From assembly GCA_033442325.1 (NCBI GenBank), contig JAWQFM010000018.1:777730-841729 (forward strand): a stretch of DNA of 64,000 nt, read 5' to 3'. A program made the position numbers and the translations under genes. The notes below the pieces were generated by a model that did no database searches, was not told where the DNA came from, and worked only from the letters and a program-made list of their open reading frames with translations. Below are positions 42,959-64,000 of the stretch, in pieces; the first letter of the stretch is position 1; every line of letters starts with the position of its first letter. The stretch comes from Salpingoeca rosetta (taxonomy: Eukaryota > Protista > Choanoflagellata).

Positions 42959-44770
<1,812 letters not shown>

Positions 44771-46512: not shown

Positions 46513-54767
<8,255 letters not shown>

Positions 54768-56030: not shown

Positions 56031-59000
56031 TTACGCGGGTGTCTTGAAGATCTCAATGTTGTCCACTACAACCTGACCCGTGCCTGTACCAGCGACGAAG
56101 CTGAGCACCATGTTCTCGCCATCAACGCCCTCTGGGACAGTGAAGTCGACAGCAAAGATGGTGAAGCGGCCCGCGGGCACCTGGTTCCGCTCGACTGTCA
56201 TGCTTGACAGCTGCGTGGTGGTGTCGGAGGTGGTGACGAGGACAGTGCACTGGAGCATGTCCAGGCTGGTGCGGTGGCCGAAGGAGAGGGTGATGGTGTA
56301 GTGCTCGCCAGAGGAGACGGCAACCGTCGATGTCTGTTCCGCCGTTGCGCCCGCGGTCATGTACAGCACCTGTGCGCCCTCCGGTGTGGGGTCGGTGAAG
56401 AAGCCCTCGGCCTTAAGCACGCCAGCGGACGATGTGACCGCCCAAGCAAAGGCCTCACCTGGCTGGAACATTGACTCAAACGAGTCGAGCTCGAAGCTTG
56501 GGTTGACCAGGGCAGACACGAGCTGGGTGGTCGACGTTGTTGTGGTGGTTGTCGTTGTTGTGGTGGTGGTGGTGGTTGTCGTTGTTGTGGTGCTTGTGGT
56601 GGTGGTTGTCGTTGTTGTGGTGCTTGTGGTGGTGGTTGTCGTTGTGGTGGTGGTTGTGGTCGTTGTCGTGGTCGTGCTCGTGGTTGTGGTGGTCGTGGTG
56701 GTTGTAGTCGTGGTTGTGGTGGTGGTGGTTGTTGTGGTCGTCGGCAGCTCACGCTCGCAGACAAAGGAGCGCTTGCGGTTGCAGCGCGTGTCCTCCCACG
56801 TGCCAATTGGGTTGTTGTCGGCGTCGCGCACGCTCATGAGAAGGCAGTTCTCGTTTGCCTCGCCAGTTGGCTCGCCCTCCTCCCATGGCAGACCAAAGTC
56901 AACGACGTCCGTGCCGTCAACCCACTCGAGCTGCCCTGGCGTGTTGAACACGCCGCCAATCCAGACCTCGTTGTTTGTTGTCATGCTGCGCGCAAACACC
57001 TCCAGCCAGTCTTGCTCGTCCTGGGAGGTGACGACAGCCAGGTGGCCGCCGTTGTTCTCGCAGGTGGACTCAGCGGAGCCGAAGCCCACCTTGTCCACGC
57101 CATACACTTGATACTCGGAGTTGCCAAACTCGACCCACAGAGGGGTGGTGGTCGTCGTCGTCGTGGTTGTGGTTGTGGTGGTTGTGGTTGTCGTAGTCGT
57201 GGTGGTTGTGGTGGTTGTGGTTGTGGTTGTGGTGGTTGTGGTGGTGGTTGTAGTGCTCGTCGTCGTGGTTGTGGTCGACGTGGTTGTGGTGGTAGTCGTC
57301 GTCGTGGTTGTGGTTGTCGTCGTGGTTGTGGTGGTCGTGGTCGTGGTCGTGGTCGTGGGAATGGGACGCTCACAGATGTAGGAGCGGGAGCGGCCGCAGC
57401 GCAGATCCTCCCACGTGCCCGTGCGAACATCGTTCTCGTTGCGCGCGTTCAGCAACAGGCAGCCTTCCTGCTTGTTACCGGATGGCTCGCCCTCCCTGAA
57501 TGGCAGGTCAAAGTCGACAACCTCCGTGCCATCGATCCAGGCGAGCTCGCCCGGTGTGGGGAAGATGCCACCAATCCACAGCTCGTTGTTTGGTGTGCGA
57601 CCAAGAGCGAAGCCAGTCACCCACGCGTGCTCGTGCTGGGACGTGATGACAGCAAGGTTACCGCCAAAGCCCTCGCACGCGGCCTGGGCATCGCCAAAGC
57701 CGAGCTTGTTCTCGTCGTACACGTTGTACTCAGACTCGCCAAACTCAACCCAGCCAGAAGACACACCATCAAAGACGGTGACAGCGAACGTGGTTGTGGT
57801 TGTGGTTGTTGTGGTGGTGGTCGTGGTGGTGGTTGTGGTTGTGGTCGTCGTGGTTGTGGTTGTGGTTGTGGTCGTGGTGCTGGTGCTGGTGACAAAGACG
57901 CTCGAGGCGTATGACGACGAGGCAAAGGAGCCTGTGGTGGTCGTGGACGTTGTCGTGGACGTGGTGGACGTCGTTGTCGTTGTTGTGGTGGTGGTGGTTG
58001 GGATGGGGCGCTGGCAGATGTAGGAGCGGGTGCGGCCGCAGCGCAGGTCCTCCCACGTGCCCGTGCGAACATCGTTCTCGTTGCGCGCGTTCAGCAACAG
58101 GCAGCCCTCCTGCTTGTTACCGGATGGCTCGCCCTCCCTGAATGGCAGGTCAAAGTCGACAACCTCACTGCCGTCGATCCAGGCGAGCTCGCCCGGTGTG
58201 GGGAAGATGCCACCAATCCACAGCTCGTTGTTTGGTGTGCGGCCGAGTGCAAGGCCGGTGACGAAGATGTGCTCGTAGTAGGAGAGGACGACAGCGAGGT
58301 TACCGCCAAAGCCCTCGCACGCGGCCTGGGCATCGCCAAAGCCGAGCTTGTTCTCGTCGTACACGTTGTATTCGTAATCGCCAAACTCGACCCAGCCGTC
58401 CGGACCGTCGAACACGGTGACTGGTGGCAGGGTGGTTGTGGTCGTTGTGGTGGTGGACAGGGTAGTCGTGGTGGTTGTGGTGGTGGTTGTGGTCGTCGTG
58501 GTGGTTGTCGTTGTCGTCGTGGTGGTCGTGGTCGTGGTGGTCGTTGTCGTGGTGGGTGCAGGCCTCTCGCAGATGTAGGAGCGGGAGCGACCGCAACGCA
58601 GATCCTCCCACGTGCCCGTGCGAACATCGTTCTCGTTGCGCGCGTTCAGCAGAAGGCAGCCTTCCTGGGAGTTGCCGGATGGCTCGCCCTCCCTGAATGG
58701 CAGGTCAAAGTCAACAACCTCACTGCCGTCGATCCAGGCGAGCTCGCCCGGTGTGGGGAAGATGCCACCAATCCACAGCTCGTTGTTGGTGGTACGGCCG
58801 AGTGCAAAGCCAGTCACCCACACGTGTTCATGGAAGGATGTGACGACAGCAAGGTTACCGTCCACGGCTTCGCATGCGGCCTGGGCATCACCAAACGACA
58901 GCTTGGTGTCTGCGTACACGTTGTACTCTGAGCCTTGGAACTCCACCCAGCCGGAGGAGGGGCCATCGAAGACGGTGACGACGAGGGTCGTGGTTGTGGT

Positions 59001-62000
59001 TGTCGTGGTGGTGGTGGTAGTAGTTGTGGTTGTGGTTGTCGTGGTGGTGGTAGTGGTGGTTGTGGTTGTTGCGAGGACGCTTGAGGCGACTGAGGACGAG
59101 GCGAAGGAGCCCGTTGTGGTGGACGTCGTGGTAGTGGTCGTGGTCGTGGTCGTCGTGGAAACGACACGGCGTGCGCGGTGGCCTGAGGCAGCGCTCAGGA
59201 TGGTGCGATATGAAGACAAATCCTCGCCTGGAGGTTGCGGGGTGGTGAAGTGTGTCGTGGGTGGGCGGAGGTAAGTGGTGAGGGGGGTGGGGTGGGGATT
59301 TGGAAAGAGATGAAAGGTGAATTCGACAATCGCAACTCCAAGTTGAACATACTGAGCTGGACGACGTCTGAATGGTCCATGCGCAGGCACCACTGCTCGT
59401 TGCTTGCAGGGAGCTGTTGGGACGGTGGGTGGGTGTTGGGAGAAGGGGTTGGGGAGAAGAGGGGGGATAATGGAGAAGGGGAGATGGGATGTGAGGAAGA
59501 GTGGGATGTTGGGCTGTGCATGATGTGTGGTTGGGGTTGGGAGGGAGAGAGGGAACTAGGGAAAGGGGGGGAGAGACACAGAGAGCGAGAGAAGAGATGC
59601 AGTGTGTGTGTGTGTGTGTGGTGCAAAACAAGACGCACCGAAGAGTGGATCATCTGCATGTGTGTCCAGTCTGCGGACGCGGCGGCCGGGGTCAGCGTGG
59701 AGATGGTGGTGACCTCAATGTCGTCTGAAGAGATTTTGTTTTTGTTTTTGGGGGGGGTTGGGAGGACAGCGGAGGTGAGGAATGAATGATGATGCAGGTG
59801 TGGGGTAGGATGGTGACGATATCACGCGGTGGAGGTGTTGCTGATGTACTTACCATCGAGGGTGATGGAGAGGAGGGTGTGACCGCAGAAGTTGCCGTTG
59901 TTGTTACTGCCAACAAGGGCGTGACCACCAGCGAGGATGGACGCCGAGGAAGCTACCAAAAGGAAAGGGGGGAGGGTGGAGGAGATGTGCATTGGAGTGT
60001 GAGTGTTTGTGTGTGTGAGTGTGTTTGTGTGTGTGTGTGTGTGTGTTTGTGCGTGTGTGTGTGTTTGTGCGTGTGCGTGTGCGTGTGTTTGTGTGTATGT
60101 GTGTGTGTGAGTGCCAAGGACGCACATGCGCTGGGAGGTGCCAATGGGTTGTTGTGTGGATTTATGTTTTGCAAGGCACGAGGAGAACCGAACGGTCGGT
60201 GGCAAGGTGCCCACACCTTTGGAGAGCGCGGCGAAGACGGTGAGGGCGTCGGGGGCATCGGCGAGCTGGGCAGAGGAGAGGACAATGGAGGCCTCCAGCG
60301 CATCTGCAAGCACAGCCTTGTCGACACCAAACACAGCTGTTGTTTGTTTGTTGGTGGTGTGCGTGGGGGGGAGGAGGGGGTGAGTGAGCGGGTTGGTGGG
60401 GAGTTAGGAGAAGGGGGTGGGGAAGTGGCAACGTAAGCAGGTGACTGTGTCGGGGACGGTGATGTGTACCTTGGGAGACAGCGGAAACAGACGACTCAAG
60501 GTCAAGGCCTGTTGCCAGAGCGATGCTGGAGGTGCTCACATCACCGTCCATGCCAATGAACACCGCGGCGGATGTCTGAGGGTGTGTGTGAGTGCGGGGT
60601 GTGTGTGTGGGGGGGGNNNNNNNNNNNNNNNNNNNNNNNNNNNNNNNNNNNNNNNNNNNNNNNNNNNNNNNNNNNNNNNNNNNNNNNNNNNNNNNNNNNN
60701 NNNNNNNNNNNNNNNNNNNNNNNNNNNNNNNNNNNNNNNNNNNNNNNNNNNNNNNNNNNNNNNNNNNNNNNNNNNNNNNNNNNNNNNNNNNNNNNNNNNN
60801 NNNNNNNNNNNNNNNNNNNNNNNNNNNNNNNNNNNNNNNNNNNNNNNNNNNNNNNNNNNNNNNNNNNNNNNNNNNNNNNNNNNNNNNNNNNNNNNNNNNN
60901 NNNNNNNNNNNNNNNNNNNNNNNNNNNNNNNNNNNNNNNNNNNNNNNNNNNNNNNNNNNNNNNNNNNNNNNNNNNNNNNNNNNNNNNNNNNNNNNNNNNN
61001 NNNNNNNNNNNNNNNNNNNNNNNNNNNNNNNNNNNNNNNNNNNNNNNNNNNNNNNNNNNNNNNNNNNNNNNNNNNNNNNNNNNNNNNNNNNNNNNNNNNN
61101 NNNNNNNNNNNNNNNNNNNNNNNNNNNNNNNNNNNNNNNNNNNNNNNNNNNNNNNNNNNNNNNNNNNNNNNNNNNNNNNNNNNNNNNNNNNNNNNNNNNN
61201 NNNNNNNTTGGAGTGTGGGGTGTGAGTGTGTGTGTGAGGGTGTGTGTGTGTGTGTGTGAGAGAGTGTGTGTGTGTGAGTGTGTGAGTGTGTGACAGGTTG
61301 AGCATGGACGCGAGTTCATGTATGAAGCAGGCAAATTGCATGCGTGCATGCAAGAGAGAGGGAGGAGGCTCACCTCGAGGGAGCGCATGAGGGCGTCAAG
61401 GCCGGAAACGATGTAGGACTCGTCGTCGAGGACAACGCAGCGGCTGCACTCTGCCAATGCCGTGGCGATGGCCTGTGTGCAGTTTTTTTTTTGGGGGGGG
61501 GGAGGGGTAAGCAAGGGAGGGGGTGTTGGAGAGGGGGTTGAAAGGGGTGAGTGAGTGAGTGAGGAAGAGAGTGAGAGTGAAACAGTCAGTGACAGAGTGA
61601 GTTTGTGTGTGGGGGGGGGGGTGGTTGGGGCAACGCAGAGACGGCGTTGCAAGCGGACAACACGTGATGATGCACACACACACACACACGCACAAGTGTC
61701 GCAGAGCAGCGAAAAGTATGCACGCACCTTGGCGTGCGCCATGTCGGACTGGGAGCTGATGGACAGGGGCAGTGGGCGAGAGGCAACGCTGCCATACTCG
61801 CTCATCTCCGCCACGTCCGCATCATCCGCGAAGAACACCTACAGATGGAAAAGAGTCGGCGAAGTGGGGGGGGGGAATGAGCGGGTGAGTGAGTGAGTGG
61901 AGGGGCAGTAAAAGGGCAGGAAAGGGGAAGGGAAAGGGAAAGCGGATACCTGCAAGCAAGCAAGCAAGTACAGGATTGCAGAACAAAGCACACATGCGAA

Positions 62001-62784
62001 CACACTTCGATGGAGCCGTGGTAGTTGTCCTGTTGCCTGAGGTTCTGCACAATGACTTGTGCCCTGTTTCGAGTTGTGCGCGGCGGGGTTTGTGCGACGA
62101 GGTTAGTTGTGTGAGCTGCTGTCAGGAAGGACATCGGTGCGGTCAGGGTTTGTTTGTGGATGCATGCAAGCAAGCACGCGAGACAAGAAGGTGGTGTTGT
62201 GGAGAAGGGGACGTGGAGCGTGTACCTCGCAGTGTCTGTGGCGACGAGGACAAGGCCAAGGCCGGAGCCCTGGTTGAGCTGTAGTTGTGCTTGTTGGTTG
62301 TGCGAAGAAGACTGTTGTGCTCGTTGGCGAAGCTGTGCAAGGTTCAGCTGCATGGGAAGTGCTGGATGATGATAGGGGGGGAGGGGGAGTGTGATGGAGG
62401 TGGGATGTGAGGATGATGGGGGATGTGAGGAGAGGGTGTCTTTGCTTGATGTGTGTGGTGGATGGTTCGCATCATCACGAAAAGCACATCGTTGGCCAGT
62501 ACAGTGCACCAGTCTTGCGTCGTTGTGTATCGCATGCAGTGCCGTGAACTCCACCAATCGATCACACACACACACATACACATACACATATACACACGAC
62601 AACAAACGAACATGCTAACATGCGCTGCGTGCGCACACACACGCACACGCACCCACGCACGCATGCATGCTGGCAGGGCACATCCACCACCATCGCACAA
62701 CGACTCACGTCGAGCGGCGACCAGGAAGGCGAAGCACAGCACAAGCGCTGCGCATGCCTGCACACCATGCGATGACAAGCGCAT
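56031..62784 (-). CDS. Secreted mucin-like lectin: putative signal peptide, degenerate GT71-like domain, RARR site, 4 C-type lectin domains in poly-Thr linkers, C-terminal CBM-like beta-sandwich; 5' exon uncertain
   Basis: Large last exon (~59229-56031) with four CTLDs ([46 protein letters not shown]). It ends in [36 protein letters not shown]. Eight small upstream exons (62348-59352) join in phase. Candidate signal [24 protein letters not shown] at 62784, but its phase to the next exon is unresolved. Confidence 0.8.
57365..58950 (-). repeat. Three near-identical ~390-bp intragenic repeats (CTLD1-3)
   Basis: Blocks ~58563-58950, ~58010-58395 and ~57365-57752 share long identical stretches such as ccacgtgcccgtgcgaacatcgttctcgttgcgcgcgttcagc. 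Confidence 0.9.
60617..61207. other. Assembly gap within an intron of the lectin gene
   Basis: Run of n. Confidence 0.99.
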
Positions 62785-63895
62785 GGCTGGACGGTGGCTG
62801 CTGCTGTGATGGGAACAAGGAAGCTGGCTCGGGCTCGCTGTGGATGGATGGATGGATGGAAGCGGGGGGTTGGTTGGTTTTGGCGCAACAAGCAGAGCAA
62901 GGTGAATGAATGAACGAGTGTTCGAGGTGGGGGTTGGATAGATGCAACCACTACGAGTGGACCAACAGGCACAATGAATGAACTGCGCCGAATGAATGCA
63001 ATAGCGGCAGTGGATGGATGGGTGGGGCTTTGAGGGTGGTGCTTGCTGGTGCAAGCTCGCACAACTGCTGCTGTTGCTTGTGAGTGGGTGGGTGAGGAGG
63101 GACTCACCTTCAAAACTGATGGGCACCACGCCGCAAGTACAAAATGGATATGGTGGCGGGGGGGGGAGCGGAGCGGAGCGTGGTCGGAGGAGAGGGTGGG
63201 TGCACAAGACACACAGGCGTGAGCGGAAGCGATGTGGAGGTAGGTGAGAGAGGGTGTGGAAAGGATTTTGGTGGTCGCCAACACAGTGCACGGGGAATGT
63301 GGTGTGCACATGAACAAGACGAGGCAGAGGACGGACCAAACACACACGCACAAGGGGACGGACAAACCCGCACGCACGCATGCAGGGGAGGGCGAGGCAC
63401 ACACACAGCGATGCAAGCAAGACACACAGCCGCACCCCACCTGGCTCAAGCGTCGCACGACAAAACACCAACGCGCGTGTGTGTGAGTGTTTGAATGAGT
63501 GGCTGTGGCTGGTCAGGTGTCAGTGAGTGAGTGAGTGAGTGAGTGTGGAGTGAGCGGGTGCAGTCAAAACAACACACACCCAAAACAGCGTGCGTCGCCA
63601 AAACAATCACAACGCCAAGTTTTTCTTCTCTCTCTGTGTGCGTGTGCGCTGTGGCCGCGGCGGGGCGCAGGCGGAATTTTTAATTTTTTTGCCTCTTTGC
63701 TGGTGGCGTTTTTGCTTGCATGCAACCCGCACGACGCACCGCCCAGCAGAGAACAATGGCCTCTCTGTTTCATTTTGGCGTTGGAGAGTGCGCATTTTGG
63801 TTGGATGCATGGAGATGGTGGATAGACGACACAAAGTATATGTGTCGGTGTGAGAATTTGTGGTGTCGTGGTGGAGGTGTGTTTGGTGTGTGTGT

Positions 63896-64000
<105 letters not shown>

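Follow-up and report, generated by a model that had tools for sequence, protein, structure and literature searches.

A minus-strand gene of Salpingoeca rosetta predicted to encode a mucin-like protein that combines four C-type lectin domains with a head domain of doubtful GT71 affinity

The stretch analysed here, referred to as the window, comprises 64,000 nucleotides (nt) of the choanoflagellate Salpingoeca rosetta (GenBank assembly GCA_033442325.1, contig JAWQFM010000018.1, positions 777,730 to 841,729 of the forward strand), and all positions below are given in its own numbering. On its minus strand lies a gene with one exon in the 5' untranslated region (5'UTR) and 11 coding exons, as placed from RNA contigs and canonical splice sites. 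We consider it probable that this single gene encodes a secreted glycoprotein composed of an N-terminal head domain, mucin-like stalks, four C-type lectin domains (CTLDs) and a tail resembling carbohydrate-binding modules (CBMs), and that the head is not demonstrably a member of the glycosyltransferase family GT71, to which a first-pass annotation made from the DNA alone had assigned it.

Gene structure and expression

After splicing, the coding sequence measures 4149 nt and encodes 1382 amino acids (aa), and its sole in-frame stop is the terminal one. Six-frame translation and the reverse complement place the coding peptides in short open segments bounded by GT and AG, and all exon joints appear as CT..AC when read on the plus strand. 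Exactly one canonical GT..AG placement exists for every intron (11/11), including the 5'UTR intron of 270 nt (63107-62838, GT..AG). The visible stretch of the 5'UTR carries neither an in-frame ATG nor a stop ahead of the start codon. The features of the gene are listed below in the direction of transcription.

63108..63228, minus strand: 5'UTR exon; 3' end at 63108 by canonical placement, the consensus of contig loose ends at 62839 resuming at 63110
62709..62837, minus strand: exon 1, with the ATG at 62784, encoding the predicted signal peptide of ~25 aa; contig alignment edge at 62839
62226..62361, minus strand: exon 2, Q-rich linker and start of the head domain; RNA joint 62709>62361, GT..AG
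61797..62266, minus strand: GT71-like block, residues 58-104, across exons 2, 3 and 4; from profile comparison
62006..62063, minus strand: exon 3; RNA contigs and GT..AG
61728..61838, minus strand: exon 4 (VFFADDADV...MAHAK); RNA contigs and GT..AG
61374..61472, minus strand: exon 5, carrying the DxD-like DDE; RNA contigs and GT..AG
60617..61207, no strand: assembly gap of 591 N, inside intron 5
60470..60575, minus strand: exon 6; RNA contigs and GT..AG
60217..60336, minus strand: exon 7; RNA contigs and GT..AG
59854..59952, minus strand: exon 8; RNA contigs and GT..AG
59639..59724, minus strand: exon 9; RNA contig of run X7 and GT..AG
59353..59413, minus strand: exon 10; RNA contigs, translation and GT..AG
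56031..59227, minus strand: exon 11, 3197 nt in one open frame with the stop at 56031-56033; RARR, mucin linkers, four CTLDs and the C-terminal domain
59166..59177, minus strand: RARR, aa 335-338, between the head domain and the first Thr run
58545..58991, minus strand: CTLD1, aa 397-545; Pfam and segmentation
57990..58442, minus strand: CTLD2, aa 580-730; Pfam and segmentation
57348..57794, minus strand: CTLD3, aa 796-944; Pfam and segmentation
56733..57152, minus strand: CTLD4, aa 1010-1149, more divergent than the other three; Pfam and segmentation
56034..56531, minus strand: CBM-like beta-sandwich, aa 1217-1382; Pfam, structure model and Foldseek

For the RNA evidence, four runs were compared with positions 59100-62860. 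The spliced form is carried by Logan RNA contigs of three runs, each from a different study (X4, X9 and X7), and single contigs of 1369 and 1411 nt span the 5'UTR exon, exon 1 and all downstream exons into the mucin exon, of which they cover the first 127 nt (59226-59100) before extending past it. One expressed gene thus joins the head domain to the lectin part. The peptides that the first-pass annotation had quoted as products of in-phase splicing are all found on the minus strand, with their exact junctions present in the RNA contigs of the three studies.

The assembly gap lies wholly within intron 5 (61373-60576). Contigs in X4, X9 and X7 join 61374 straight to 60575, the two sides being adjacent at positions 655/656 of the X4 record, and exons 5 and 6 are in phase 0 on both sides of the gap-containing intron. 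Because this joining is direct and in phase, the expressed form has no exon concealed by the gap, and its frame runs on without a break. These observations bear on the alternative that the upstream exons and the lectin exon belong to separate genes, or that the assembly joined them wrongly over the gap into a chimera. The run of 591 N would leave room for this, as would the fact that the stretch of RNA examined ended at 59100, with no single read seen reaching the CTLDs; however, single contigs in three studies cross the gap-containing intron and run from exon 1 into the mucin exon, and the frame continues down to the stop at 56031. We therefore regard this alternative as very improbable, and the earlier proposal that the upstream exons belong with the lectin exon is borne out by the same contigs.

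The summed depth of the RNA-run contigs reaches thousands at 59100-59225 and at 62628-62753, with mixed letters at 62653. The high depth and the mixed letters are due to Thr-codon repeats and CA/GT microsatellites common to many loci, and not to the expression of this gene. Long (GT)n/(CA)n microsatellites occur at 63890-64000 and fill several introns, among them stretches at 59990-60110 and 61210-61300; in translation they appear as TH/CV repeats, which draw spurious protein matches. No annotated or transcript-derived protein for the gene was returned by word searches with the C-terminal region of the open reading frame (ORF) and with the frame of exons 4-5, or by exact look-ups, and the exon 5/6 junction had no match in a scan of metagenome contigs.

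Architecture of the predicted protein

Residues 1-25, consisting of MRLSSHGVQ and a hydrophobic core of 15 residues, would form a signal peptide as read by eye, and residues 26-56 are a Gln-rich linker. The head domain that follows (residues ~57-320, ~260 aa) is rich in Ala, Ser, Leu, Val and Asp and contains four Cys, and its sequence alternates between hydrophobic strands and amphipathic helices; a sequence scan found zero N-glycosylation sequons in it. The RARR that separates the head from the first Thr run is a dibasic consensus of the furin/kexin type.

In exon 11 the four CTLDs are set apart by Thr/Ser runs of 14-67 residues, and Ser and Thr together make up 33% of the whole protein. Pfam Lectin_C (PF00059) matches four stretches in the same exon and frame (E 4.3e-52, 175.8 bits), so that the fusion to a Ser/Thr-rich C-type lectin in one polypeptide, as it had been put forward from the DNA, is confirmed. 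The four framework Cys are kept in all four CTLDs. The canonical site residues, EPN/QPD and WND, are replaced in each of the four by EPS or EPT and by WED, and sugar binding therefore cannot be assumed.

The last 166 aa match the Pfam family HpiC1-like (PF22825) with 49.8 bits against a cut-off of 27 (E 5.6e-13), and DUF642 weakly as well. In a single-sequence AlphaFold 2 (AF2) model, this tail folds into a beta-sandwich of eight strands, with a predicted local distance difference test score (pLDDT) of ~75 over residues 55-166 and low confidence in the first 54 residues. The top PDB matches of this model in Foldseek are CBM4, CBM16 and CBM22 (E 2e-6 to 1e-4). After the CBM-like module the C-terminus shows no hydrophobic segment and no membrane anchor. 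Judged by its sequence, the lectin, mucin and CBM-like part is clearly of an ordinary kind, that of a secreted matrix glycoprotein.

Comparison of the head domain with GT71

The first-pass annotation had described the head as a degenerate mannosyltransferase domain of the Mnn2/Couscous-like GT71 family (PF11051), with the motifs of the family in their usual order. We compared it with real members of that family. A degenerate DNA pattern for HGDK[ED]xFW, run against metagenome contigs, returned 120 loci, mostly unrelated bacterial genes; at seven loci the ORFs carry VHGDKE(T/S/F)FW along with the other expected motifs, and all seven match PF11051 (E 1e-24 to 1e-58). Nine relatives from giant viruses were added by scanning viral contigs with a profile. 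The reference set therefore holds 16 GT71 sequences, seven verified by Pfam and nine from giant viruses (tblastn), from which a local profile was built. The consensus given in the first-pass annotation (GIV, LR, LPIE, K..F, LDAD, ESG..DK and GDKETF) proved essentially right when set against these sequences. The tests of the head used the spliced domain, assembled by coordinates, and were run locally.

The GT71 family is described mainly from fungi. The relatives from giant viruses lie in contigs of metagenome-assembled genomes (IMG/VR, L203-L211; tblastn E 1e-8 to 1e-27), and two short metagenome members (L125 and L187) group with them by the motif IELWQIGQE. We also modelled one GT71 member with AF2 from an alignment of 15 sequences, which gave a pLDDT of ~90 over residues 10-140. 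Among PDB structures the model is closest to yeast Mnt2 (7xjv), and next come GT8 enzymes such as XXYLT1, UGGT, glycogenin and LgtC, so GT71 has a GT8-like GT-A fold, and the GIV...LR...LPIE block forms beta1-alpha1-beta2 in the model.

With a hidden Markov model (HMM) of the 16 sequences and the filters of hmmsearch switched off, the head domain scores 8.4 bits, above the best of 2000 shuffles (5.7 bits), and it ranks first of 460 when placed among 459 real-protein windows (runner-up 6.1 bits). True GT71 members that had no part in the profile reach 102-330 bits, and the Pfam cut-off for PF11051 is 22 bits. Smith-Waterman alignment on the log-odds of the profile gives 28.6 for the head domain, compared with 13.3 +/- 1.7 for shuffles (maximum 22.8), 14.9 +/- 2.7 for shuffles of 12-aa blocks, 17.6 for the reversed sequence and 14.3 +/- 2.3 for 400 de-duplicated real windows (maximum 23.1). 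Extrapolation from the extreme-value distribution yields P ~5e-6 against shuffles and ~2e-4 against real proteins, and local hhalign of the head with GT71 yields P = 0.033. When the motif list of the first-pass annotation itself was scored, 24 of 41 letters matched, compared with 18.0 +/- 1.2 in shuffles; this test is circular and was replaced by the profile of real GT71 sequences.

The part that aligns is the same in every test, namely residues 58-104 only, on profile columns 8-54. This segment crosses two splice junctions and aligns to the block GxGIV...LR...LPIE(V/I)(F/W), which corresponds to beta1-alpha1-beta2 of the GT-A fold. Residues 105-330 score 12.1 against profile columns 55-301, while shuffles score 12.4 +/- 1.6 (270/500 reach 12.1) and real windows 13.4 +/- 2.3. 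Since these residues score like shuffles, the matches of DDE, ESS...VDK, D..TVF and FCGH are no better than chance, and the claim that the motif order follows GT71 holds above chance for residues 58-104 and does not extend to the motifs downstream of them.

The head contains VVLDDE, in which D-D-E is separated from a preceding Lys by the 15-residue distance seen in GT71; it reaches the DxD columns (D113 and D115, invariant) only under cheap gap penalties. HGDKE(T)F(W) does not vary among the 15 GT71 sequences that were aligned, and HGDKE.F occurs in all 16 of the set, which in part follows from its having been demanded by the search pattern; the colinear stretch of the head reads APDALTVF, and HGDKE.F is absent. 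Of the near-invariant positions of GT71, the head retains L-R, K and, from DxD, the first D, and possibly D141 and E-S if insertions are allowed, and it is without P49 (Ser instead), the last D of DxD (Glu), F126, Y131 and the whole of HGDKE.F. The first-pass annotation was right in so far as the head, if related to GT71 at all, is degenerate, DxD reading DDE and HGDKE.F being gone; its membership in the family is not supported, with a score of 8.4 bits and no PF11051 match for any exon piece or exon-bearing frame.

Searches of general collections gave no relative of the head. Pfam had no match for any of its exons or exon-bearing frames, PF11051 not appearing at E<=10, and a PDB sequence search with the exon-bearing frames returned noise only. 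Among 1.84 billion representatives searched with the frame of exons 4-6, the 26 matches all fell on low-complexity translated intron (TH/P runs) and none on exons, and an ESM-Atlas feature search with exons 5 and 7 was uninformative. With exons as short as these (20-45 aa each), such piecewise blanks are weak evidence.

Taken at the level of sequence, the similarity of the head to GT71 is weak, limited to the first beta-alpha-beta unit and specific to that family, and the head falls short of GT71 both in its profile score and in its catalytic motifs. Whether or not it derives from GT71, catalysis by the domain is very unlikely. A GT8 reading of the LgtC/WaaJ-like type was rejected as a specific relationship, an HMM of 78 bacterial GT8 sequences giving -1.6 bits and hhalign P 0.33.

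It is conceivable, but we think doubtful, that the head is a true although degenerate GT71 domain, a pseudo-enzyme that was exon-shuffled onto a mucin C-type lectin and kept the GT-A fold after losing catalysis. In favour of this, residues 58-104 outrank all shuffles and real-protein windows on the GxGIV...LR...LPIE(V)(F) block, which is beta1-alpha1-beta2 in the model that matches Mnt2 and then GT8 enzymes; an alignment with cheap gaps continues through K127 and sets DDE on the DxD columns; the signal is specific, the bacterial GT8 and LivJ profiles giving none; and GT71-like genes such as Couscous exist in choanoflagellates (PMC6322860). This is opposed by a bit score far below those of the left-out members and below the cut-off, by the modest hhalign P, by residues 105-330, which match the other 250 columns of the profile no better than chance, and by the loss of HGDKE.F, F126 and Y131 together with the change of P49 to Ser. 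The hypothesis also arose from the same sequence, and P ~1e-4 to 1e-5 fails correction for ~25,000 families, in agreement with the blank Pfam result. An active glycosyltransferase acting on its own mucin stalks or on neighbouring matrix glycans is suggested by three motifs of a hydrophobic strand plus acidic residues, including IGMDGD, but nearly all conserved GT71 positions beyond the first block are gone and there is no score at family level, so that we give an active enzyme hardly any credence. Equally far-fetched is another alpha/beta ligand-binding fold, for example of the periplasmic-binding-protein type I/ANF-receptor-like kind, which was suggested by the by-eye pattern of alternating strands and helices and has the support of no tool result. 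An HMM of the LivJ family ranks the real sequence 282nd/501, hhalign gives P 0.56 and pairwise phmmer nothing, and we rejected this guess on the lack of signal in all three, with the qualification that the LivJ profile is narrow, the search with E. coli LivJ having returned only near-identical enterobacterial proteins, and is a weak negative.

Interpretation, neighbouring ORFs and comparison with known systems

We favour the reading of one gene for a secreted glycoprotein with a head, mucin stalks, four CTLDs and a CBM-like tail. The signal peptide would be cleaved and the protein exported, and the Thr runs would be heavily O-glycosylated. In the cell coat or extracellular matrix the protein may act as a multivalent binder and presenter of glycans, with five putative carbohydrate-binding modules spaced out along stiff stretches of mucin, as has been proposed for Rosetteless. 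The head would be a non-catalytic domain, which cleavage at RARR might release or unmask. The roles put forward in the first-pass annotation, a glycan-binding or Golgi-routing prodomain and a link to rosette development, are speculative. Several observations weigh against this reading. The RNA contigs examined come to an end close to where CTLD1 begins, it is the open frame that connects the head with all four CTLDs, and a run of raw RNA reads (X21) has almost no coverage of the exons. The CTLD sites have EPS/EPT and WED instead of EPN and WND. The block at aa 58-104, moreover, beats every GT71 control (1st/2001 with shuffles, 1st/460 with windows, and 28.6 versus 14.3 +/- 2.3).

The genes so far found to control rosette development in S. 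rosetta fall into two classes, secreted Ser/Thr-rich C-type lectins and predicted glycosyltransferases (PMC4381721, PMC6322860). A further multi-lectin protein of the matrix, with a head domain of this kind, is a reasonable candidate for knock-out in the study of matrix or adhesion phenotypes. A more far-reaching proposal is that the head is a relic of GT71 that lost catalysis and was fused, in a close relative of animals, to a mucin tetra-C-type-lectin with a CBM-like tail, so that modules of the Couscous and Rosetteless types, both of which rosette formation requires genetically, stand in one secreted protein and the dead GT-A domain serves as a head binding glycans or nucleotide sugars, or as a cleavable prodomain; we hold this only tentatively and incline against it. 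If the head were a dead GT71 domain, a glycosyltransferase fold would have been reused as a non-catalytic extracellular module beside lectins. If it is not GT71, the gene represents another case in which a lineage-specific domain was shuffled onto a common lectin/mucin scaffold, which is ordinary for such a genome.

Two other ORFs in the window were noted.

43124-44767, plus strand: apparently intron-free ORF of 548 aa; Lyase_1 E 1e-56, ASL_C E 1e-37
49705-50775, plus strand: ATG-started ORF of 357 aa; weak P-loop NTPase signature (nSTAND3, AAA_22 and T2SSE, all below cut-off)

By its domain matches the first of these is an adenylosuccinate lyase of the bacterial PurB type, extended at its C-terminus by ~130 aa, and a translated (TH)n run lies just upstream; its exact product was not found in the gene-position collection. 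The second probably represents a single exon of a longer gene, and its exact product is not on record.

Among known systems, the closest design to that of the predicted protein is Rosetteless (Rtls) of S. rosetta, which consists of a signal peptide, CTLDs and Ser/Thr runs (PMC4381721). Rtls, the Rtls-like animal proteins and the protein described here have in common an N-terminal signal peptide, tandem CTLDs with four Cys and long mucin-like Ser/Thr runs, and both Rtls and this protein are presumed to be secreted to the extracellular matrix. They differ in the number of CTLDs, of which this protein has four and Rtls two, and in the CTLD site, which reads EPS/EPT...WED here and EPN in Rtls. This protein also has the extra N-terminal domain of ~260 aa and a CBM-like C-terminus, whereas Rtls carries RP1/RP2 repeats at the C-terminal place.

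With the GT71 enzymes (PF11051: yeast Mnn1/Mnn2/Mnt2, PDB 7xjv; Couscous) the head shares the pattern GxGIV...LR...(L)PIE(V)(F), which covers ~45 residues at its start. The DxD of GT71 and the DDE of the head both follow a hydrophobic strand at 15 residues from a conserved Lys, the alignment of the head depending on cheap gaps, but HGDKE.F is absent from the head and the spacing of ES...DK differs. In S. rosetta Couscous the GT71 domain is paired with a PAN/Apple domain and not with lectins (PMC6322860). The tail, finally, shares a profile match and a predicted beta-sandwich with CBM4/CBM16/CBM22, HpiC1-like and DUF642 modules, at an identity of 10-20% to solved CBMs.

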